DNA from: Chara braunii
Lineage: Eukaryota; Plantae; Charophyceae
DNA: 63,443 nucleotides
Assembly: GCA_003427395.1 (NCBI GenBank)
Contig: BFEA01000037.1
Coordinates: forward strand, 4,076,659-4,140,101
Direction of reading: 5' to 3'
Made by a program: the position numbers and the translations under genes. Position 1 is the stretch's first letter, and the number at the start of each line of letters is the position of its first letter. Under the pieces are notes generated by a model that did no database searches, was not told where the DNA came from, and worked only from the letters and a program-made list of their open reading frames with translations. Positions 13,213 to 49,810 of the stretch are shown here, in pieces.

Positions 13213-14768
13213 CTGCGATGAGGCACAAACACATACCAACAATAATGAATCATCAAACACAAACCTGTAAATTAATTAGCACAACCACATTTGAAGTTCG
13301 CAATCCTGTCCTGATCAACTATCAAACTGACAATCTTATTCGCCTTTACCATCACTCCGGAAATGCATAGCCAGAAAAACGATCTCACGGCGTATTTCCA
13401 TCTCAAGAAACTGCAATCATACCTTCATTCAGTTTACACTGCAGTTTCCCACACAACTTTTAGAACATCAGCCAGGTCAAAAAAAAAAAACAAAAAAAGT
13501 GCTGCTCTCTTTTCGGGGGGCAGGACGGGCGGGCCTTATGGGGAGCAGCACAAAAATAAAACCATAAATACAGAAGCAAAACAATAGCAACAGGACACAA
13601 GTTGCCAGGCAGATAATACCCAGCATGCACGAAAACAAGAACAGAAACCGAGTAAGAGCGGCCAGACAAAGTGTACCCAGCATGCACGCATTGTTTTTTT
13701 TTTCCTTTGAAACAAGAAAGAAACACAAAAGACAATGGGTCTGGCCGATGGACTGGCAAGCATAGACTGCCACTAAAAAAAAACAGAATTCAGCCACGGA
13801 CGTAACCAACAAAAATAAAGCTGGGATGTGCAAAATCCCAATTAGCAAAACTCAATCAAAAACTGGCGGTTAAAGAAAACTGCCCGGCAGCCCTCTCTAC
13901 AGATGTCATTCTCTGCGTTTACATGCTACAACAACTGCAACAGTGCACAGCGCAGATATACCCCCATCTGCCACCATGAGATACACAGCAAATAGGTCAC
14001 ATAGCAGGATCTGCTCAAAGGCCTTTCAAAACAGCAGACAGTCCCTCTTATTACTGATGGCCTCCTGCTCAAGGAATCTTGCCACAGCAAATAGGTGACA
14101 TAATAACAGCATCTGCTCAAAGGCCTTTCAAAACAGCAGACAGTCCCTATTATTACTGATGGCCTGCTGCTCAAGGAATCTTGCCAGGCAGTGCGAGAAG
14201 TGGGTACGCAGCTAAGGTGTAGCCCCCACTGCTATGTCTACGTCTGGGTTTAGGAAACCAATGCATGACATCCAAAGTTGATTCTTACCGGCTCATTGTA
14301 ACCGTTGAATTCATTAACAAAGAACTATACCTAGTCCAGTGGCGCCTGCCCATTAGATCCCTGAGAGATAAGGAAGAGGGCAGCTAAGAGTCCAGGAGTG
14401 TCTCTGCAAGCTGGCTTTAGCGCAAAGGATATGCAACACAGCGTACGGCCAAAGACCAGCACCGAAAAGGAATCCTATTCCCATTATTCAAGGTCGTCAC
14501 TGCTGCCCTTCCATCTCATGACGCTTGATTGTAAAACGGATCATCAATCTTACGGTGCAGATTGGCCATTCATCTTTAAGTACCTCCCCATTCATTGCAT
14601 CCCCCCTTACCCCCTGACCTTCATCCCCGAGCAAAGTGAGAGAACAACAAAGAAAAAACAACAATGGTTACGAGCCTCACCCCTTTCCCAGGCAAGGCCA
14701 TCATACACCGCACTTGAACTAAGTCGAGAGTTGACATCGAATTTTCTTTTTTTCTTTTTTTCCGTCCT

Positions 14769-14866
14769 AAAATTTGGACCATTTCTCAATTTATGTGTCA
14801 TCCTCACGCAGGGGCCATGCTAATCTTCGCTGTGTTGTTCCAATTTTCACGCATTTCCCAAAGTTC
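14769..14866 (-). pseudogene. U6: U6 snRNA pseudogene or retrocopy
   Basis: aaaattggaacaacacagcgaagattagcatggcccctgcgtgaggatgacacataaattgagaaatggtccaaatttt matches plant U6. The ACAGAGA box is changed to ACAGCGA. An A-rich tract follows. Confidence 0.9.
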
Positions 14867-15055
14867 TGGATTTGGATTTTCAATAAGCTTGGCAGCAGCA
14901 CCTTCTGATGTGTCATTGCAGCAAGACTAGTACGGACACTCAAAAACGCACTAGTCGAATACGTTGAACCAAAATCACCACAACACCAAAATAACCACAA
15001 CAGAACTGTTTCATTATGACAACAAGGAGGATCAGGGATGGTGGTTATACTTTAC

Positions 15056-22169: not shown

Positions 22170-22641
22170 GAAGGAAGTGGAGCACAGACAGGATCCAGGT
22201 CGTGATGGAAGGTGCTCGTCGGCGTGATGAAGAATCGAGATGGGGACGAGGATGGGTGGGATTTGTTTATGGAGAGTTGGTATTCATTTTTATCGAGTCG
22301 GCACTGGGGGATATGACCGAAAGAGACACAGAGAGAGAGAAAGAGAGAGAGAAAGAAAGAGAGAGAGAGAGAGAGGGCTCAGATTCGGGAAACGCTCTTG
22401 CTCTTACTATTGCCTATGTGAATACTTTCCTTCCCTTTTTTTTCTTTTCCGCCGCTGACCCGAATGCCCTTCTCCCGTCCTTTCCTTTCATCTCGCTATC
22501 CCCCCCTCCCCCCTCTTGCTGCTCTGTGCACGGAGCCGCTGCGGGTCCCCTTGTATTTATCTATTTATGCAAGATTCTCATAGAGAGCTTTGCGGGTAGC
22601 TATAGGCAGAGAGGGAGAGGAGGATGACAATGACGGGCGAC

Positions 22642-22812
22642 TGAGTTTCACCAGCTCATCAGAGGCTGAACCCTTATATATATGTCATATCCATATACTG
22701 CTGTATATATAGAAAAAGAAACATATGTATATAAATATATATTTCAATACGTATATATTAGGGTTCAGCCTTCTGATGACTGAGCAAAACTCTGACAACA
22801 CAATCTGTCACA
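22642..22812. ncRNA. Two degenerate hammerhead copies in opposite orientation around a TA-rich tract
   Basis: Minus copy about 22642-22676 (agggttcagcctctgatgagctggtgaaactc). Plus copy about 22759-22812 (agggttcagccttctgatgactgagcaaaactctgac). Confidence 0.6.
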
Positions 22813-23028
22813 GTCCGCTCGCTTCTTGTCCCCTTCTCCATCTCTACTTGCGGATCACTGGGCATTTCTTTATAACGCTATATTTAGTATTTACGTATAT
22901 ATTGTCAAACAAAACTGCCCTGTAAATCGTAGGCAGATATATACATATATATAGTCAAAAAGAGCTGCCCGGTAAACTGTCGGCAGAGAGGGAGGAGGGA
23001 GAAGAGGACAACAAACGAAGGGCTGTGG

Positions 23029-23086
23029 CAAACTGTTCCGTCGGAGTTTCGCTGACTCATCAGGAGGCTGAACCCTCAACAGTCTG
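23029..23086 (-). ncRNA. Type III hammerhead copy, probably inactivated
   Basis: Same family as 27583-27640, but GAAA is changed to GGAA and stem II has a mismatch. Confidence 0.75.
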
Positions 23087-24182
23087 CAGAATCCCCTAAC
23101 TGATTACACTGTAAGTGATAATCCACCTTAACCCCGGCTGTGGTTAAGCACCAACGACTGCCCGACAACTGATACCCTGAGATGGGCACCAACCACTGCC
23201 CTCAAGGTACCTGTGGCAAAAGCCAAAGCAGACTATCACTCACCCACACCAGATGGAAAAATCTACAGACTGTCGGTATATGTATACATATATATACATT
23301 GTCACAGAACTATTGACTAAGAGCGTAAGCACGTGAAGTAGGAGAAATAAGATGAGCGAAGAAAAGAAAAATGAAAGGACAGACAGGCAAAGAGACAGAC
23401 AAACCAAAATGACACAAAACAGTGTCCTCTTATTCTTTGTTTCACTGTATTCTTATTTTTTTTCAGTGTTTTGCAAAAAACATCACAGTGAACAAGGGAT
23501 AAAAATAAAAAACAAAGGCACATTGAAATCATTCAGTTTCTCAGTCTTCTTAATGCCTCCTCCACCTTGCCTCTAACATATAAGGCTCGCCACGTTGATG
23601 AAATTGAGCGCGAGCTATATATATATATTGTCACATACCTATGAACTAAAAGAGCACACTTTGCAAAACAAACGGTAAACGTAAAATAAAAATCAGACCA
23701 ACATGAAGGGCACGCATACCATTCAATTTTCTCATTCTTTCAACTCCCCCTTCACCGTGCCTCTCATGTACAAGGCTCGCCCCATTGATGAAGTTGAGTG
23801 TGAGCTGCCCGCATCCCCGTGTGCCACAACGGTCCACTAGTACGCTGAGAAAGAGGCAAAGTAAAGGGGGATGGGATAAACACAGGGAAGCGAGACACAG
23901 AGAAGACAGACACAGAACGACGAAGTATGGAGTGTGGAATGAAGATGAAGGCAAAGGAGAGGATAAGAAAAGGCTCAAGAACGAGTCTGTCCTTGACGAC
24001 AGAGAGGACATACATTGTAAGGATGAGGTGGATGAGCACATTGAAGCCGTAGGTGAGAAGAATTCTCAGGACAGCAATTGCCACGTCACCCGGCATTGAG
24101 TCTGCCCAGCATACACACCCGGCAGATGAATATCGATTGCAGGCCAAATAACAAAAGAACGTTCACCACAAAAGACCATGCA

Positions 24183-25860
24183 TTAGGCATAGCTCCCATG
24201 ACCGCAAAATGAACATCGTGTCTGGATGTCGATGGTGCCTGCAGTCAGGATCGGAGGGACAGNGCAAAATGAACATCGTGTCTGGATGTCGATGGTGCCT
24301 GCAGTCAGGATCGGAGGGACAGTGTTGCATACTAGTGAAAGTGAACACAAGTATGACACAGAACCTAGAACCGACCAATAACAAAGAGCAATACAATGCA
24401 GTGGAAGATTTGAAAACATGGATCTGAACTCAAATCTGACTCGGACTACACACAGGCTCACACACATACATTCACCGGGTGAGGAGGCCTGGCGCTCCAG
24501 ACATGGAAGTTGGCGCCAGAGCCTGTGCACAACGTGTATGGACGAATGGAGGAGGAGGAGATGGCACCAACACAAAGTCACTGGAATAGTAATCCCAAAA
24601 TGTCAAAGATACAGAATCTCGAAATGTCGAAGTTACAGAATCTCAAAATGTCAAAGTTACAGAATCTTGAAATGCCGCTCGTATCAGATCTCCAAATAGT
24701 CCTCCCAACGTCCTACTCTGGAATAGTCTCAGTCCTGATGTCACCGATATCCCCCCATCAATCTCTGTCCCATAGTAACCGAGAAGATAGAAGGTTAGGG
24801 GAAGATGAAGATGGAGGAGAAGAAGAAGAACCGAGAGAGGGCAGAGGAGAAGGTGGAGATGGAGAGGTAGGGCAGAGGAAGATCCTCCTGCCCTGATCCA
24901 GTGCCCAGGCACCAACCTGCGGGTGCAAAGTGCCGCCTTGGAGCTGATGAAGACTCGCCCTCGTCGCTGGAGCCATGGCGCTCACAGGTAGGTGACAGGT
25001 AAAGTGTCTCCCTCTCGCTCTCGCTGCTTGCAGCTAGTGCTATGCCTAGCGCTCTGCCTGGAGCTGCGCTAATCCCAAAATAGCATAGCACTACTCCTCA
25101 ATGCCGCGGCCTCCAAGTCTGTCCCGAACAGACACCTGGTCGGTACTAAGTACCAGTGGTGGCCTGTTCGGCCTGGCTGCTGAGGAAGACGCGCCGTGAT
25201 CAGAACCGTCAAAGCTGATTTGCGGTTCAGATCGGACCCGTGGGGAAGTGGCAGCCTCAAACTTCGGCCGCCAGGCTCAAACAAAACACGTTTGAGCCAC
25301 TTTCCCGCTCAGGGCCTGCAGTAGCAGACCCGGGCCTAAAACCAGTTGCTGGGGCCTACCGTCGGTTTTTCCGAAGGTCCGGCCTTTAACCCAGGCCGGA
25401 CTGGCCCAGCATGGCCACGGTCTGGGATAACACCCTAGACCTAGCCGTCGGGCCTAGCAGGGCCCGTGTGGAATCCAGTATGTAACAGAGTCTACGCATG
25501 GATGCAGAAACCATGTCATAGTCTACACATGGATGCAGAAACCATGTCATTGTAGTGATTGTGCCAGAAAAATAACGGCTACAGCCATTTGTAGCTATGC
25601 AAAGGAGAAGGTCGCAGCGCGTTGGTACATCGTCCACCTGCAGCACAGGGTCAGAGGAATGATCTTCAGCATAAAAGAGATTGTGGATGGATTGGTGTGG
25701 CAAGAAAACGGCATCATTGTGTAAGCAGTCAATAACATCAGTTATGGCATGGACCAGGACGTCGTTGTCCCACAGCTCCAGTGGTCAGAGGCATGTACTA
25801 TGGCCATGTAATGGCCAGGTCCATTGCAGGCAGATGCAATGAATTGCAGTTGCTCACGCG
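24183..25860 (-). pseudogene. Divergent paralog of the protease/Cys-His ORF, interrupted by an insertion
   Basis: GPGHYMAIVHASDHW/ELWDNDVLVHAITDVIDCL matches RPGHHMALVRAAAQWELWDGGTMSQAIFDVNEFL. HNHYNDMVSA and HCPSDPDCRHHRHP lie on either side of the insertion. Confidence 0.6.
24323..25487. mobile_element. Solo-LTR-like or TIR insertion of 1165 bp splitting the Cys/His ORF
   Basis: Termini TGTTGCATAC...GTATGTAACA (TG...CA with a 10-bp imperfect inverted repeat). The flanks rejoin to match the uninterrupted paralog near 32130. No clean TSD. Confidence 0.55.
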
Positions 25861-27582
25861 GGCTGTACACTAAGTTTGTCTGCTGTTTGCCTACTCTGAG
25901 CCCTTTGGGACTTGATCCCGTGACCTACAGTTCGTACGTGTTGATTACTAGCTTGGAGTCCTGCTGGGCTTGATCCGTGAACCTGTCATTGGTAGTCTCT
26001 ATTTGGCAGTCTTAGACCCTTCAGGTCTTGCTGTTTTGTCCTTTTCTGCTCTTCTGGAAACTGGTAGGCCCATAGGTCTCTCGTTTGTGTGTCCTAGTCT
26101 TCGGTCCCCGTAGTCTAGATTTCCATCCACATGGATGTAGACAGGTCTTGACTGTTCGGACGTAGATGTTTGCTGTTTCGACGGTCAGATAGATTCGTAG
26201 GTGACTGCTGTGTTGCAGGTCTAGGGAAGTCGGGTAGAAGTAGGGAGAGGCCGGTGAGCTTGAGGCTCTTTCCTCATCTTTTTGGAAGTGGCGATGGGAG
26301 TACGCGAGCGGCACTATTTCCAGCGCTCAGTCTTCTTCCTCTTCGAAGGGGAACTTGGGCTGCCATTGGGCGCCCTGCTGCATGAGGAGGCAGCATCTGT
26401 AGGTCTTCCAGGTGCTGATGCCACTGCCGTCACGTTGCTGTTTGTGGGGTTGAAGAACAGCCGCTTTCTTCCTTGAGCGGCTTGCTTGTTGCTAGTTGCT
26501 GCCATACCAGGGCAGCCATCATCTTCTTCATTGAGCCTCATCTTCTTCTTCACGGTGGTTTGCGGCGCTGCAACTTGATCTCTGGCTCATGCCAGATCAG
26601 CACCTGTACTCACAGGCTCGGGGCATGATGAGATGCTGTTTTCAACAGTGGGCTATCATTGGAGGTTTGGGGTCGTAGGGAAAAGCAGTTTCGGTGAAGC
26701 TTCATTGAAGTGTATTGTCGGGGGTTAATTGGAGATGCTGTTTTCAACAGAGGGCTATCGTTGGAGGCTTGGGGTCGTAGGGAGAAGAGGAAGTTCCGGT
26801 GAAGCTTCGTTGAAGTGTATTGTCAGGGGTTAATTGGAGGTGGAACAGATTTTGTGGTTGAGACTCTTGGAGTTGTTAGGTTCACAGGAGGAGAGCAGAG
26901 GGTGTAATATATAATTGATTGAAACATTTTCTCTCAATTTTTATCTGGTTTTGGCTTCTGCTTTGCAATCTCTCTCCATGGCTATGGTGTGAATCTGCTC
27001 TCTACAGTCGGCCTGTCATTGCAGATGTGTATGGGAACATTTGAATGCGGTTTGGAGTTGTGAATCAGTCGAACACATAACACAGAGACGTGGAACGGAG
27101 GATTAAACGACTCACTTGCTGGAGCATTGCGTAGTTCAAGTTGGCAGTCCCTCATTGCTACTCGTAGGACAGCAATGGTAAAGCCTCTTTCCCTGGTATA
27201 ATTACAATCCTCTGGCTGTAGCAACGGGAAATCAGCATCAAGCTGAAGGGCGATTGCAAGGAAGTCTGGCGGTATATAAAAAGAGCGGTGAATAGCACGT
27301 ACATATGTCTGCCTCCAGTTTTGAGGGCAGTTTTGTTTGACGATATATTGTCACAGAACTATTGATTAAGAGCACAAACACGAAGTAGAAGAAGAAATAG
27401 GATGAGCGAAGAAAAGAAAAAATGAAAGGACAGAGGCAAAGAGACAGATAACCCAGAAAGACACAAAACAGTGTCTTCTTCTTCTTTGTTTTAGTGTTTG
27501 ACGATATATATCATCACAAATAGAACTGCCCGGTAAACCGTAGGCAGAGAGAGAGAAGAGGACAGCAAACGAGGGGCTGTGA

Positions 27583-27640
27583 CAAACTGTTTCGTCGGAG
27601 TTTCACCGACTCATCAGGAGGCTGAACCCTCAACAGTCTG
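27583..27640 (-). ncRNA. Type III hammerhead ribozyme with intact core (GUU site)
   Basis: CAGACUG-UU / GAGG-guucag-CCUC / CUGAUGA / GUCGG-ugaaacu-CCGAC / GAAA / CAGUUUG. Stem differences from the 4644 copy preserve pairing. Confidence 0.9.
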
Positions 27641-28123
27641 CAGAATCCCCTCACTGATTACACTGTAAATGATAATCTACCTTAACCAAANAGGAGGCTG
27701 AACCCTCAACAGTCTGCAGAATCCCCTCACTGATTACACTGTAAATGATAATCTACCTTAACCAAAATCAAAGTAGACTATCACTCACCCACACCAGATG
27801 GAAAACTCTACAGACTGTCAGTTCACACCCCATCACAAGCCAGCAAAACATCCACGAAACAAAGAAAGGTCTGTCACAGCCAAAAAATACACTCCAGACA
27901 CGCCGCTGGCACTCGAGGCACAGCATGGCCGCCTAGTAACGGCCCCGACCACTGCCGCTCGACCTGACCGGAAAAAAACGTAGCAGGAAGCTAGCGAAGT
28001 CGTAGTATATATCGTCACAAATAGAACTGCCCGGTACACACTATAAATCGGAGCGCAAAGGCGGAAAAATACAAAACAAGAAAAGGAAAAGAAGGAAAGC
28101 CCCACCTGTTCATCACCTCTTTC

Positions 28124-28201
28124 GTACAAGGCCAGCCACGTGGATGACAGGTTGAGCGCTGGCTGCCCCCATCCCCGTGTGTCACAAGGACCCACTTGCA
28201 C
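28124..28201 (-). ncRNA. Unidentified conserved pseudoknotted RNA motif (representative copy)
   Basis: Other copies at 23582-23616 (partial), 23768-23843, 29461-29541, 31056-31122, 31571-31649 (all minus) and 49581-49646 (plus). Compensatory changes GCCAGC/GCUGGC, GCUCGC/GCGAGC, GCCACC/GGCGGC and GUC/GAC versus GCC/GGC. Confidence 0.6.
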
Positions 28202-28409
28202 GCAGCCAAAAGGCAAAGAGGTAAAGAAAAGGAGGAAACCAAACCTGACAGGGAAAGAAAGCCTATCAGTCAAACAAAGCAAATGAGACATCCCACAGAT
28301 AATCCAATTGTCACAAAGCAAATAACACATCCCACAGATCAGCATTTTTTTTTCTATTCTTATTTTCTTATTTTCTTATTTTCTTATTTTCTCTTTTTTT
28401 TATTTTCTC

Positions 28410-28595
28410 TTATTCTTTTCTTTTTTTCTGTTTTTCTTTAACCGTCCCCACCTCGGCAGATACGACAGCTACGGTGAGGATGATGTGGATGTTCACAAGG
28501 ATACCCAAGGAGAGCTGCGCTAGCACAGCATTCAGCAGGACGGCTAGCACGAACCATCCCATCAAAACAGTCCTGACAGAGGACATGTTGTCCAC
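28410..28595 (-). CDS. Short hydrophobic ORF (putative membrane peptide) directly after the Josephin-like ORF
   Basis: Hydrophobic run GWFVLAVLLNAVLAQLSLGILVNIHIILTVAVV. Related runs (NVLIHLILTMYVLSV, HVFIQLTLTMYVLSI) occupy the same position in the copies near 24.0 kb and 31.8 kb. Confidence 0.35.
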   Translation of the reverse strand: MDNMSSVRTVLMGWFVLAVLLNAVLAQLSLGILVNIHIILTVAVVSAEVGTVKEKQKKRKE

Positions 28596-28598
28596 ATG

Positions 28599-29341
28599 TT
28601 AAAAAACAGCAGGACGTTCATCACAGTGTGGCATCATGCAGTTCTGATAGCGTCCTTGGGCACAAAAGGGACAACGTATATCTGGGTGATAGGGATGTGT
28701 ACAATGAGAAAATGTTGGACACCCTTCAGTACAGATGGCGGCAGTCGCAATAGATTGGTAATGGCTATGGCATAGGTGATGCATTCCACAGCCAAGGCGC
28801 ACTGCATCACTGTCCCGACAGGTGTCACAAGAGAGTCGGTCAATAATCCAAAATAATGTATGATTCGGCAATGCACGCAAAAATTCATTTACGTCAAAAA
28901 TAGCCTGACTCATCGTCCCACCATCCCACAGTTCCCACTGGGCAGCTGCACGAACGAGTGCCATATGATGCCCGGGTCTGTGTAAAATACAGGCAGAAAT
29001 ATGAGGATGGTTATTGAGGTCATCGCCTGGCGTCGCATGATGCATAAGAAGGTGGCGGCCGTGCAACGCTAACTGTAAGACATTTACAGTAAAACCTCCT
29101 GAGGTAGAGTATACTTACTGCCTTCAGGAGGTGGACTATTATGATCATACAACAACTGATTTTCAACAGCGACAAGCTGATACTCAGTCGTGACAAAATG
29201 GGAAGCAGTATAACATTGACGATGATAAGCCTGTAGGCAGACATTTGTGGCTGTCAAGCCACAAGTATTTGGTAGATCTGCCCGCAGATCTGATTCGGTC
29301 ACCACTGGAAAGCTAGGTCTGATCTGGAAGGGTCTGCGCAT
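28599..29341 (-). pseudogene. Josephin (MJD/ataxin-3-like) cysteine protease followed by a Cys/His-rich motif, with one frameshift at about 29085-29120
   Basis: Joining ORFs 29084..29341 and 28599..29066 gives TCGLTATNVCLQ..YT...F....QL...E, GGFTVNVLQLAL and ACILHRPGHHMALVRAAAQWELWDG. These parallel ataxin-3 LCAQHCLNNLLQ..FS...L....QL...E, GFFSIQVISNAL and SFICNYKEHWFTVRKLGKQWFNLNS. Downstream motif HHLCHSHY...CTEGCP...CTHPYHP...CPFC. Confidence 0.65.
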
Positions 29342-30075
29342 ATATATATTGTCACATGAATATCAGAGGGCAAAGGCAAAAAAAAACAGAAGAAAACAAG
29401 AAGAAAAATCAATTCGTTTTTTATCGTCTTCCTTACAACTCCCCCTATTCAAAACCTCTTGCATACAAGGCCGCCCACGCGGATGTAGGTTGAGCGGTGG
29501 CTGCCCCCACCCCCGTGTGTCATATCGACCCACTTGCACACAGCCAAAGGGCAAAGAGGCAAAGAAAAGAGGAAGGGATCAGCCAAATACAACAAAACAG
29601 GGGGCAACAAGCAATAGCACCAAAAACGGATCCTAGATGACAAGTCCCACATGCAAGCACCGCCCCTCCTCCACAGGCCAAACGACAGGACAAGACCACC
29701 CAGGACAAAACTCTAGTAAGCAAAAAAAGAAAAATCCCAGATTACATATCTATATACAGCAGCTGGCCTTGTTCGTCATCAAGACGTAGGTATTCCCATT
29801 TGTAAACCATTCCTACTGGGACAAAAAACATAAAAGACAATCCCAGATGGCGATTCCCACATGAAAGCACCGCCCCCTCACACAGGCCGAACAACGGGAA
29901 GCAACCAACTAGGATGCCAAGACAACAAAAGAGAACCCGGATGACTGGTCCCACATGAAAGCACTGCTATGCTTGCCAAAAGCGACTGAGCAACGGGACC
30001 AAACCAGCCGGGATGCAGACAGGGTTACCAAAACAAATTAGTAAAAAAACGGAACCATACATATATTGTCACAGA

Positions 30076-30780
30076 CAGGGTAACCAGCGTTCGGGACGGG
30101 CCAAACGCCCGAACCCGAACGCCCAAACGTACGGGACCCCTTGGGGATGCGTTCGGCCGTTCAGGCCGAACGCGGACCACAAAAAAAACAACAAAAAAAT
30201 CTAAAAAAAGATATGTTATGAAGAAAAATAAAATAAACAACCTTTGCCTGAGCATTACATCCAAATTTGGTAAGCATTACATCCAAATTACTTACCAAAT
30301 TTGATATAAAAATAAAATGCAGAAAATAAAACTAATAATCAAAAAATAAGAAAAAATGAAAAGAGAATTAAAATTAGTGAGTGAGCGAGCACGTTTTTGA
30401 TAAAATGCAGAAAATAAAACTAATAATCAAAAAATAAGAAAAAATGAAAAGAGAATTAAAATTAGTGAGTGAGCGAGCACGTTTTTGACACCACCATCTT
30501 TGGCGATTTTTAATTTTTGTTTGGCTTAGCAAAACGACTTCAAAATTTTTAGGCATGTACCTCACATCATGGTGAAGTCACAAAAAAAATTCAGAAAAAA
30601 GCTTATTTTAAGGCCCCGAAATATTTTTTGGCGGGGGCCGAACGCCATCGGGTTCGGACCCCGAACGGGACCCCGAACAGGACCCTGAAGGGCCTGAACG
30701 CCCGTATGTATGGAGGTCAGCACGCCCGTACGTATGGAGGTCAGCCCAGGGACCTCCGTACGTACGGACTGGTGACCCTG
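30076..30780. mobile_element. hAT-type MITE
   Basis: TIRs CAGGGTAACCAG / CTGGTGACCCTG. Perfect 8-bp TSD GTCACAGA at 30068-30075 and 30781-30788. Confidence 0.85.
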
Positions 30781-31861
30781 GTCACAGAGCTATTGACTAA
30801 GAGCGTAAGCACATGAAGTAGAAGAAGAAATAAGATGAGCGAAGAAAAGAAAAATGAAAGGACAGACAGGCAAAGAGACAGACAAACTAGAATGACACAA
30901 AACAGTGTCCTCATTTTCTTTGTTTCACTGTATTCATATTTCTTTCAGTGTTTTACCAAAAAAAAAATACACTGAACAAAAGATAAAAATAAAAAACAAA
31001 GACACATTGAAATCATTCAATTTCTCAGTCTTCTTAACTCCACCATGCCTCTAATGTACAAGGCTCGCCACGTTGCCGAAGTTGAGCGCGAGCTGCCCCC
31101 ATCCGCGTATGCCATAACAGCCATGGGAAAGAGGCAGAGTGAAGGAAGACGTGTTAAACACAAGGAAGAGAGGAGCAGAAAAAGAAAATCGATAGGCAGA
31201 CTTAGGAAGAATAAGAAAACGTGACACAAACATCTTCTTTATTTTACTGCATCTTTCTTTCTTTCACAGTTTTGCAGTTTTGGTGAAGAGTACCACGTTC
31301 ACTTTCCAGCGCACCTGCACTTCTTCACTTTTTATTCTCATTTTCACCCTTCAGACTTTTTCTTTGAGGGTGTTAGGGTGCACGGTACAAACAAAGTAAA
31401 ATGACACGAACTTATGTTATATATGTATATATATATTGTCACATATTTATAGACAAAGAGCTCGCTTCGTGAAACAAACACTAAAAATACACAAGACAAA
31501 CATGAAGAGCACACTGAAACCATTTATTTTTCCCATTCTTCTTCTAACTCCCGTTCCACTGTGCCTCTCACATGTGAGGCTCGCCACGTTGATGAAGTTG
31601 AGTGCAAACTGCCCGCATCTTCGTGTGCCATAACGGCCCACCTGTATGCTGTGAGAAAGAGGCAGGGTAACGGGGGAGGGTTTAAACACTGAGAAGAGGG
31701 ATGGAGAGAGGACAAAACAAAGAACGACCAAAGGAAACTGAGGAGTGCAGAATGAAGATGAAAGCAAAGAAGAGGATAAGGAAAGGCTCAAGAATCAGTC
31801 TGACCGTGGTGATAGAGAGGACATACATTGTAAGGGTGAGTTGGATGAACACATGGGAGAC

Positions 31862-32240
31862 CTAGCTAAGTATTATCAGTACAACAACTGCCAAGACGGC
31901 TAGCATTGAGCATGCCCACCATACACTCCCGACAAATGGCATGTCAATTGGATGAACACATGGGAGACCTAGCTGAGTATTCTCAGTACAACAACTGCCA
32001 ACATGGCTGGCATTGAGCATGCCCACCATACACTCCAGACAAATCGCATGTCGACTGCAGGCCAACATGAAGGACGAACGATCACCAAAAACCTCCGGGG
32101 GTGGAAGGTGCCTGCAGTCCGGAGCGGAAGGACAGTCCTCTACACACATACATGCAGAAACCATGTCACGGTAGTGATTGTGACAGAGAGTATGGCAATA
32201 TATCATACTCATGAAGCACCTGCACGGTGTGTGTGCAGGG
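31862..32240 (-). pseudogene. Third paralog, Cys/His-rich part only (5' truncated)
   Basis: HTLCHNHYRDMVSACMCVEDCPSAPDCRH matches both other copies. Followed by a hydrophobic segment and the pseudoknot motif. Confidence 0.6.
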
Positions 32241-39800: not shown

Positions 39801-40909
39801 ACGAAGAGCCAAAGAGGAAATTCGAAATGATGAATATGCTTCCATAACTGACGAAGTGGAAATTCGTTTGCCTAACTCGGTTCACATTACTTCAAAGTTG
39901 AGTGGTCAAGGGGGTAATATAACGCGTCATTCGGGATAGGGTGGCCGGCAGTGTTCCGAATGAGGGTATGCCTAAATCGGTTCACATTACTTCAAATGAG
40001 GGTATGACGTACGTACCCGGTCGATGTATGAAATGTACGCACATGTAACTCTTGACTGATAGACAAATCAAGAGTTCGAAACCTGCCGGATACCGTAATG
40101 CTAACGAACGGCTATTCAATTTAGGCCACCCGCTTCAGGAGGATGGATGTGCTGCCCGAAGTCCCTTTTTTGGGGGACGAGGAGCCTAGCAAACTTTCAG
40201 GGATATCTTCAGCGACCAATTGAAGAAATACATCACATTCTTCAGCCAGCAGCCCTAGCGCCTCTAATAATATATTTGCACTCGCTCTCATCTCCATCTG
40301 TGCTCAAGTGCCTCCCAGAAAAGCACACCAATAGCTGAGAGAAAGTTTGTTTGCTGGAATGCCTCTCGTTGGAATTTTACCTTTCTTTTTCCAGTTGAGG
40401 GCGTTTAAACAAGCGTCTGAACAAATGGAGGAACTGGCGCAAACAGCACAAGTGCAGCAGGGTGTTGGGGAGGCCCTGTAAGCCGAGCGAACTGTAGAGG
40501 TAGGGAGGGAGGGAGGGAGGGAGGGAGGGAGGGAGGGAATCGAGGGAAGTATCCCAAGTTTCAGCCCCTACACATCCCACATAGGTTGCCTTTGACCGCT
40601 ACTGTTTCTGGACTGGCTAGTCCAAGCACGACACCTTGTACAGTGGGGCCCGCCCGGCTCTCGAAAGCGCACATACAGCAACATGTGTCTGAAATGGAAC
40701 GCGCACGCATGGTAGGTGCACAGCGAACAACGTATGAGAGGGGACTGCTGCTGCACCCGTGATGGGAAATTCTAGTAAGCGAAAGGACATACATAGACGA
40801 GGGGGCGGGAGGGCGAGAGATAGATAGTGAGAAAAGGCATAGTAGCAAATAAAATGCGTGCACTGTAGACTCTCGGGTTTGTTTCCTGTCCTGAATGTTC
40901 ATTACTGAC

Positions 40910-42193
40910 CTGTCCAAGGTCTGCGAGCAGCTGTCCGTCGGCTCCAACGCAAGAGAGATTCCACCTCAGCAAGGGCCTGAGCCTTTCGTCCATTCTGCAC
41001 GCCCCGACTGTCTGCCACTGGAACGTCTGAACCCAAGATGCCACAGCTCCTCCTCCCATTCCCATAGGATTAGTGGAACACCTGGCACTTCCCTCGGCAG
41101 CGGGCTGCAGCCCCCCAGCCGAAGAAACGCCAGGAGCAGCAGCACCCCCAGCACCACCATCACCGCGTCCTCCATCTCTCGCTTCCCCTGCCAAGCCATC
41201 ATTCCTCAGTTCGGCCTCCATGGAGGCCGAGCTCCTCCCTCTCGTCGACCCACTTCTACTGGCAACCCGACCACTGCCCCTCCCCCCAACAGTCACACCC
41301 ATCTGTCCACACGATCTCGAATGCAGGAGCGATCGTCGACGGCACCCACCATCGCGATCCTCCCCCGCTCCTCCTTGATTGAGCATCCCGCCTCCGGTTC
41401 CCGCCATCAACCCCTCGTCGTTATTCCTTGAAGCCCCTCCCACGTATGCCCAAGGGAGCGCAGGCGCTCTCCCATAGACCTCGCCCACTGCTCTCAAACC
41501 AGAGGCAAGGCGTTGATCCCCTCCCCCTCCAGAGCGATCGAAGCAGTCCCACCCCCCCTCGTCACTGCTCTTCGACGTCGAAGCCACACTAGACGACCCG
41601 TAGCTGTTAGCCACAGACGAAGACGATGACGAAGTCGAGAGAGGGAGAGAACAAGCCGGAGAAGAACAAGCGTTTAGCTCCACGTCCGCCCGATTTTTCT
41701 CTCTGTTATTGTTACTTGACTCGCTTCGCCTTGCCTTGTTATCGATATTTCGCCCCATAACCCCATCGCTGCTACGTTCTGACGGGCTACGGCTGCCACC
41801 TGCTAAACCGGGTGGTGTTGAGGTCGGCCCTGCTCTAGCCGGTAACCTGGGAGGAAGGCCCGTGGTTTTCCTCCCGCCGTCATACCTCTCCAGTAACGGG
41901 AGGATTCCTCTAAGTCGATGGCTTCGACTCCTATCCCGATCCCGTGAAGAGCCCGTTCCGGCGGCGGAACGCGACTCCCAACCAAGATTGCTGGTTGCTT
42001 GCCAAGCCGACCCTTCCCGTCGATCTTCGTCCTCGTCGCCATCATGGGGGATGCCGTCGCAGTCAACATGAGGTCCAGGCACTCGCCCTCCGAAACACCT
42101 ATCGTGCCGGAGCTGATCATTCCTCCCAGCATCAGCCATCGCCCTTTGACTTCGGGCGACTCCAGGGTCCTCGTCTCGACTGCTCCGGACTAA

Positions 42194-42228
<35 letters not shown>

Positions 42229-42754
42229 CCCCTATCTGCGAGCGGTAGTTTTGGTACCCCCTCCTATTACGAAACGAGAACTTCTTCCTCTCCTCCTCCC
42301 TCTCCTCCTCGGAGGAGGAAGAGGAAAATGGCGACGACGGCAATTTGGACGGAGCTCGACAGTTAAAAGGGGCCGCACCATCCTGTATCAGAGCACTGGC
42401 GCAGTCATCTGCGCCTCCTCGTCCGCCGCCGAGAACCCATCCACGGCCGTCTCCATCTCTAGTCGCCCCTCCTCCCCCTACTCCCCCTCCCGCCCCTGCT
42501 CGACAGTTCAAAGAGGCGGCACCATCCTGTATCCGAGCACTGGCGCAGTCATCTGCGCCTCCTCGTCCGCCGCCGAGAACCCATCTACGGCTGTCTCCAT
42601 CTCTAGTAGCCCCTCCTCCCCCTCCTCCCCCTCCCGCCCCTCCCCCTCCGTCTATTCTCACCAGGCCCCGTGCCCCCTCTTCCGCCACCCTGGGTTCTTC
42701 AATGACCGCTTCTCCCGCAGCACCGTACTCCCCGTTACCCCTGGCGTCCTCCAT
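40910..42754 (-). CDS. Exon 1 (615 codons) of a large plant-type gene with an RPN13/Pru-like domain; Gly/Ser/Arg-rich N-terminus
   Basis: Starts at ATG 42754 and is open for 1845 nt. Ends ...WQTVGACRMDERLRPLLRWNLSCVGADGQLLADLGQ at a phase-0 donor CAG|GTCAGT. This end resembles, from memory, an uncharacterised land-plant family (At2g39950-like; unverified). Confidence 0.8.
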
Positions 42755-49410: not shown

Positions 49411-49810
49411 GTAGGGTTCTGACTCCTGAGGAGTTGGTAGGTGAAACGTCAAGGAAACAGTTTGTCACAACCACTCCCTCGTTCGTGGTTCTCTTCTCCC
49501 TCTCTCTCTACCTATGGTTTACTGAGTAGTTTTGTGTGACGATAAACTATGATTGAGAGTGTGTGACAATATGTATCTTCTGACACACAGGGATGGGGGC
49601 AACAGTCAGCAGTCAACGTGTGTCATCCACGTCGCTGGCCTTGTACGTAAGAGGTAGGTGATGAACACGTGGTCCTTCCCTTGTTTTCCTTTTTTTGTTT
49701 TGTCTTTTTCCGCCTTTGCGCTCTGATTCCCTGTGTGACAAAGATATATAGATGAGTCGATGAAACTCCGACGAAACAGTTTATCACAACCCCTTGTTTA
49801 TTGTCCTTGT
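49411..49810 (+). mobile_element. Second cluster of the ribozyme-bearing retroposon family
   Basis: Degenerate hammerhead 49411-49465 followed by the family tail ending tgtgacgata. Pseudoknot motif 49581-49646 with a tail homologous to 28012-28120. Partial hammerhead gatgagtcgatgaaactccgacgaaacagtt at about 49750-49782. Confidence 0.75.

Follow-up and report, generated by a model that had tools for sequence, protein, structure and literature searches.

A conserved structured RNA in the 3' untranslated region of Chlamys-1-type Penelope-like elements of Chara braunii contains a loop resembling that of twister-sister and lantern ribozymes

Chlamys-1_cBra is a Penelope-like element of Chara braunii that combines GIY-YIG, reverse transcriptase (RT), Josephin-like, and Cys/His tail domains and has microsatellite targets (Craig et al. 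2021, PMC8557442). Canonical hammerhead ribozymes are restricted to two other Chara/spike-moss Chlamys subclades, Chlamys-1_cBra being without them, and most Naiad/Chlamys elements do well without a known ribozyme (PMC8557442). The presence of ribozymes in Penelope-like elements still lacks an agreed explanation, and Naiad/Chlamys has been cited as proof that they are dispensable. Besides, in the lantern ribozyme the loop and two stems suffice for cleavage (PMC11620745), and candidate motifs near ribozymes often fail to cleave (PMC6765202).

We analyzed a 63,443-nt stretch of C. braunii DNA (hereafter, the window), which is repeat-rich eukaryotic DNA. An earlier examination of the letters (the sequence-only reading) had described seven copies of a motif here, and seven were found using BLAST, nhmmer, and a covariance model, four of them full-length and three incomplete. 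Seven further Chara loci, fetched via Chlamys-1-like proteins, yielded 15 more copies, i.e., 22 in ~380 kb of C. braunii DNA, a density that is not usable as a genome estimate because the loci were picked for Chlamys-1 frames. The motif copies and neighboring features of the window are as follows.

28120-28205, minus strand: conserved core, subfamily A copy (the motif under study), full-length
29459-29543, minus strand: motif copy, subfamily A2, full-length
23764-23847, minus strand: motif copy, subfamily B, decayed, full-length; Cys/His tail upstream
31568-31651, minus strand: motif copy, subfamily B, decayed, full-length; Cys/His tail upstream
31050-31123, minus strand: motif copy with an internal deletion removing the 5' strand of P1 (outer stem)
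23572-23616, minus strand: motif copy that follows a (TA)n run and begins, by 5' truncation, at the A preceding the pairing loop
49566-49652, plus strand: motif copy, 5'-truncated in P2, decayed
28413-29362, minus strand: 3' part of a Chlamys-1_cBra-type ORF, frameshifted (Josephin-like + Cys/His tail)
27504-28010, minus strand: separate short hammerhead-bearing unit, with a type III hammerhead at 27584-27639

The motif at 28124-28201(-) is located ~210 nt past the stop codon of the frameshifted Josephin-like and Cys/His frame at 28413-29362(-), in a copy whose 5' truncation lies near 29350 and whose end is near 28040. The named relatives of this Josephin-like frame are C. braunii proteins. 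In all cases with an attached frame, the motif lies in the sense orientation, 50 to 630 nt downstream of the stop, and it follows the frames of two-finger and four-finger Chlamys-1 subfamilies alike. RT, Josephin, tail, and motif are colinear at three loci (L004, L008, and L018), and GIY-YIG, RT, tail, and motif occur together at another (L007). Judged from these frames, the host of the motif is a Chlamys-1_cBra-type Penelope-like element (RT-Josephin-Cys/His), with the domain set of the published Chlamys-1_cBra, for whose UTR no RNA structure was reported (PMC8557442). The element end reads TGTGAC followed by (TA)n in subfamilies A and B, and (CA)n in subfamilies C, D, and E. The distance from motif to element end, first given as about 100 to 300 nt, measures 79 to 356 nt.

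Chlamys-1 3' ends and hammerhead units have repeatedly inserted just behind one another's (TA)n ends and are stacked head to tail (window 22500-32200; L004:12500-15800). Elsewhere in the window, two long low-complexity frames, 140-3559(-) and 40772-42754(-), have no Pfam match and are probably Chara gene exons, a U6 snRNA-like copy with several changes lies at 14768-14871(-) (Rfam, 77.7 bits), and near-exact tandem duplications parted by one N (27616-27767 and 24204-24322) are probably assembly artefacts.

Between subfamilies, the 85-nt core is 73 to 90% identical (92% for the close pair D/E), whereas the 80-nt flanks align mostly at shuffle level and the Josephin regions of motif-bearing elements show 27 to 43% protein identity. 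The claimed contrast between a conserved motif and diverged flanks was thus confirmed, and it shows purifying selection on a non-coding stretch. A search of the accessible literature, most subscription journals lying outside its scope, returned no description of the motif. The motif is real, selected, and absent from Rfam, and its host element is already known.

On the element strand, the domain is larger than first described. An outer stem of 15 to 20 bp (P0), overlooked by the sequence-only reading, enlarges it to ~140 nt; its parts are listed below.

28095-28240, minus strand: whole structured domain including outer stem P0, fold z -2.6
~28215-28240 (5' arm), 28205-28214 (small hairpin), and ~28097-28121 (3' arm), minus strand: P0
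28195-28203 with 28122-28130, minus strand: P1, 9-bp stem
28194-28201, minus strand: GUGCAAGU strand, with the letters of twister-sister SL4 G29-U36, paired within P1
28181-28191, minus strand: P2 hairpin, 3 bp and 5-nt loop, with compensatory changes
28158-28163 with 28131-28136, minus strand: loop-to-3'-strand pairing; the middle three pairs covary
28167-28173 with 28143-28151, minus strand: stem closing the twister-sister-like loop (GAUG-N-GG); the bulge position differs between subfamilies
28152-28166, minus strand: twister-sister-like internal loop, short strand GCAG (28163-28166) and long strand GCUCAA (28152-28157)
between C 28154 and A 28153, minus strand: predicted C^A cut

P0 was better than in shuffles (at most 2/200) in 13 of 17 copies. 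The P0-containing domain folds at z -2.6 in the window copy and at -4.3 to -4.5 in three other subfamilies, whereas folding of the bare 79-nt core is no better than that of shuffles (z -0.6). In an alignment of 16 copies, 90.6% of the cells pair, with two-sided changes at nine pairs; slid controls gave 28 to 46%, and the covariation score was matched by none of 500 column shuffles. Five forms of the loop-to-3'-strand pairing occur, differing in its middle three pairs, and a tree-aware null of our own design left one significant pair, which lies in this pairing (P 5.5e-5; E 0.002 when only proposed pairs are counted and 0.21 when all pairs are, in a small sample).

Several helices of the fold first proposed held up in this alignment. 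The 3-bp hairpin (P2) covaries as claimed, with two-sided changes, and the outer stem GUGCAAG/CUUGUAC is present and actually spans 9 bp (P1), although its two-sided changes fall on CpG sites and may be decay. The 6-bp loop-to-3'-strand pairing likewise exists and shows two-sided changes, but one of the examples cited for it, GCCACC:GGCGGC, contains an A-C mismatch. Neither the CACG/CGUG stem nor the GGGC/GCUC hairpin shows any two-sided change, and for the latter a rival register gains 4 to 6 kcal/mol in stability in intact copies, pseudoknot energy not counted. The preferred register, in which GAUG-N-GG pairs with the strand following the AAC, suits all subfamilies with a shifted bulge and one G-U to U-A change; it surpasses every other nested fold tested in stability, and its pairs have probabilities of 0.93 to 0.99 in subfamilies C, D, and E. 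The loop pairs of subfamily A reach only 0 to 0.26. Several pairing registers compete. A GCAA-tetraloop hairpin replacing P1 was rejected, being compatible with the alignment yet far less stable. While the stems covary, the letters of the GCAG / GCUCAA loop stay fixed, and the G-U pairs are consistent with the sense strand only. The motif is a sense-strand structured, selected cis-acting RNA in the Chlamys-1 3' UTR / pseudo-LTR.

The sequence-only reading had regarded nearby hammerhead carriers as sister units and the motif as a functional replacement for their hammerhead. Type III hammerheads occur at 27584-27639, 23030-23085, about 49413-49460, and other positions, in a unit of a few hundred nucleotides with partial tandems. 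This unit (27504-28010(-) and 22945-23277(-); L004:7418-7888) is non-coding, lies at (TA)n, and has in its 5' part weak words that may be Pol III box-like. Since it shows no homology to motif-bearing 3' UTRs beyond a similar TGTGAC-plus-(TA)n end, it is an unrelated short element and not a sister unit. It is true that no unit has both structures, but these are separate elements, and no swap between sisters took place; what survives of the replacement idea, which had included a possible ribozyme, is a well-supported selected RNA structure in the zone in which other Penelope-like elements keep a ribozyme. As a positive control, 6 of ~23 hammerhead copies begin 1 to 6 nt past the predicted hammerhead cut, such 5' truncations being a genomic trace of cleavage. 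In addition, two tandem type III hammerheads lie 115 nt apart within (CA)n at 4610-4835(-), one of them at the Rfam gathering score.

The near-invariant GCAG / GCUCAA loop together with GUGCAAGU presents the catalytic-loop letters of twister-sister and lantern ribozymes minus one base (twister-sister numbering and comparison from the crystal-structure paper PMC5660989, PDB 5Y87, four-way; lantern from PMC11620745). Equivalents of twister-sister G5, C6, A8, G9, G59, C60, U61, C62, and A63 are kept in 14 to 16 of 16 copies. The long strand is that of the LINE-1 lantern ribozyme, whose pattern is passed by 9 of 16 copies, the rest having point changes. A lantern-like loop and an SL4-like strand occur jointly in 4e-5 to 2e-4 of dinucleotide shuffles, the patterns having been chosen after the twister-sister lead. 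The SL4-like strand is paired with a probability of 0.88 to 1.0, and its opening would cost ~8 to 15 kcal/mol in most intact copies. Because an A7 equivalent is absent, SL4 is paired in P1 and not in a hairpin, and the wiring differs, we place the motif outside the twister-sister family, although it may work like twister-sister without belonging to it.

Our leading reading, at a probability of roughly 45%, is that a twister-sister/lantern internal loop makes the motif a self-cleaving ribozyme that is slow or gated. The 7-bp stem would close the GCAG / GCUCAA loop, the covarying loop-to-3'-strand pairing would stand in, intra- or intermolecularly, for twister-sister P2, and the SL4-like strand held in P1 would be a brake or a vestige. 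The cut would fall at GCUC^AA (28154/28153), slowly or only once P1 is open or two RNAs have paired, and might trim tandem read-through transcripts to unit length, as ascribed to Penelope-like hammerheads. In the long-hairpin fold the loop sits ~15 bp from its partner strand, so the inner stems would have to rearrange or the pairing would be intermolecular. None of 11 incidentally sampled motif copies starts at the predicted cut (one-sided p ~0.08 against the hammerhead 6/~23, calculated by hand). In the Penelope-like element PAc, RNA ends were not observed at the hammerhead cut site (PMC11167929), a warning that missing end signals are compatible with a ribozyme.

The main rival, which the sequence-only reading had already named, is a protein-binding handle by which the Chlamys-1 RT/endonuclease would pick its own RNA and start reverse transcription 80 to 350 nt downstream, in the manner of R2 3' UTRs. 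We regard this as somewhat unlikely, although integration of R2Tg depends on a pseudoknotted 3' UTR element, bound by R2Tg, that is also sufficient for it (PMC12222951), and the minimal RNA of PAc lies upstream of internal RT start sites, hammerhead cleavage being dispensable in vitro (PMC11167929). The R2 structure, too, is a conserved domain with a pseudoknot and lies in an RT element's 3' UTR, but the R2Tg element occupies the last 67 nt, belongs to an unrelated element class, and is likened to our motif, which lies 79 to 356 nt before the end, by position and fold only. Across subfamilies, the motif goes with the RT family, and its invariant loop letters could be protein contacts. However, a handle leaves the twister-sister letter match unexplained, the distance to the 3' end varies fourfold, and the hammerhead unit, whatever its mobilising partner, has similar ends and targets without the motif.

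Less probable still is a role without catalysis, as a switch or dimerisation element acting on the stability, localisation, or translation of the RNA, with mutually exclusive hairpin and pseudoknot states or with the loop pairing to the junction strand of a second molecule. The CACG/CGUG and 7-bp stems set the loop at a distance that, by geometric reasoning, is hard to bridge within one molecule, and several registers compete. Four copies are truncated inside the motif, at start columns ~18, 27, 43, and 75, all different and forming no peak, as RT stalling at a structure predicts. No independent regulatory evidence was found for this reading, and it is compatible with catalysis or RT binding and no alternative to them.

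An exonuclease-blocking structure leaving a stable 3' fragment, the other alternative put forward earlier, is improbable by a wide margin. In xrRNAs, a ring encircles a 5' end that is single-stranded. The motif does combine a three-way junction with a pseudoknot in a 3' UTR, but P0 and P1 enclose its 5' side in ~25 bp of helix, the 5' edge of the domain is not the start of any copy, and there is no Rfam match. Finally, that the stretch has no RNA function, being a DNA-level element or merely similar repeat copies, deserves scarcely any weight: a single pair beats the tree-aware null and the copies are related, but a core 73 to 90% identical between mostly shuffle-level flanks in elements with Josephin identity of 27 to 43%, a covariation score reached by 0/500 shuffles, and sense-strand-only G-U pairs all stand against it.

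Beyond Chara, neither of two covariance models gave a convincing match. Viral and prokaryotic collections, scanned by protein, revealed no relatives, and the motif was absent from the six loci of a metagenome scan. Pattern scans gave 18 matches in GTDB genomes and 10 in IMG/VR, none with the full architecture, and since these numbers are about those expected by chance, we regard the prokaryotic and phage matches as chance. One distant metagenomic unit, L002, encodes GIY-YIG, RT, and Josephin; its RT shares 56% identity with a piece of Chara RT, and the unit was assembled with a 130-nt terminal overlap. It holds GCAG-N5-GCUCA with a complementary 6-nt strand (6-bp pairing) 586 nt past the stop (L002:574), whereas a hammerhead core and an SL4-like strand are absent. 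A descriptor of this motif, written after L002 was seen, has 0.007 matches expected in the non-Chara loci. Both covariance models fail to detect it, and the 3' regions of three relatives (L003, L015, and L016), though short or cut, are without the core. Given the post hoc descriptor, the failure of the models, the missing SL4-like strand, and the three negative relatives, L002 is only a lead. Apart from the motif, L002 is an apparently intact 5,772-nt Chlamys-like unit without a Cys/His tail, and Josephin-bearing Chlamys elements are not confined to Chara. The 3' UTR of the non-Chara RT-Josephin relative L015 contains a different putative nested pseudoknot (L015:2496-2620; 7-, 11-, and 6-bp complementarities) with some HDV-like order, in a single sequence with no Rfam match.

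More tentatively than self-cleavage as such, we suggest that the motif is a natural, selected twister-sister-type ribozyme, rewired in a noncircular manner, with P2 as a pseudoknot or intermolecular pairing and a gated docking loop, in a clade thought to be ribozyme-free, and that a related core exists in distant non-Chara Chlamys. If the RNA cuts, a "ribozyme-free" family would hold an unrecognised ribozyme, which would suggest that self-cleavage is needed and its chemistry exchangeable, and the rare twister-sister core would turn out to be abundant in a eukaryote and wired in a new way. Even without cleavage, it remains the first well-defined conserved RNA domain that we know of in Chlamys elements, as well as a candidate handle for an RT of a telomerase-related group.

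Compared with known ribozymes, the motif could be distinguished from twister, pistol, HDV-like, and hammerhead classes on letters and linker lengths, and Rfam gave no match at the gathering threshold or at E 10. HDV-like ribozymes are nested double pseudoknots with P3 running into P1 and a catalytic C in J4/2; by inspection, the helix order of the motif does not fit. The hammerheads of Penelope-like pseudo-LTRs (PMC4209133; PMC8557442) likewise lie near the element 3' end, but the motif has no CUGANGA/GAAA core, and its family is reported to have none. With twister (type P1) and pistol, it shares outer and inner stems and a loop that pairs with the strand separating them, with a 6-bp pseudoknot from a hairpin loop as in pistol. 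It differs from twister in having no U-A cut site with a general-base G in L1 and no demonstrated second pseudoknot; its junction is UGG plus a hairpin, and unpaired purines are absent before the 3' pairing strand. It differs from pistol in lacking the 2-nt G-U junction (15 nt with the hairpin here) and the A32/G33 and G40-C41-G42 linkers, zero-nt linkers flanking the 3' pairing strand on both sides. The sequence-only reading had seen a permuted pistol or twister and conceded that the canonical nucleotides did not match; that concession holds, and the closest match is instead twister-sister/lantern, which makes a rewired known core likelier than a new class.

With twister-sister (PDB 5Y87; PMC5660989), the motif shares the L1 letters in a stem-closed internal loop, the equivalent of the first P2 pair G10-C58, and the SL4 G29-U36 letters. 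It departs from twister-sister in its short strand, which in intact copies is the 4-nt GCAG and not 5 nt, with no equivalent of the extruded A7; in an A at position 64; in the swap of P2 for a loop-to-strand pairing; and in the SL4 letters, which stand 5' of the loop, paired in P1, with C37 replaced by G and no hairpin closing. The known three- or four-way junction wiring is absent, and the Rfam model gives no match. With the lantern (TS-like) ribozymes of human LINE-1 and OR4K15 (PMC11620745), it has in common the long strand GCUCAA, a loop between two helical elements, and a retrotransposon setting. Its short strand is 4 nt and not the 5-nt GC-N-AG, and its second helix is a pseudoknot-type pairing or one extra pair; unlike lantern, it sits within a 140-nt conserved domain, in a 3' UTR and not a 5' UTR, under clear purifying selection across subfamilies.
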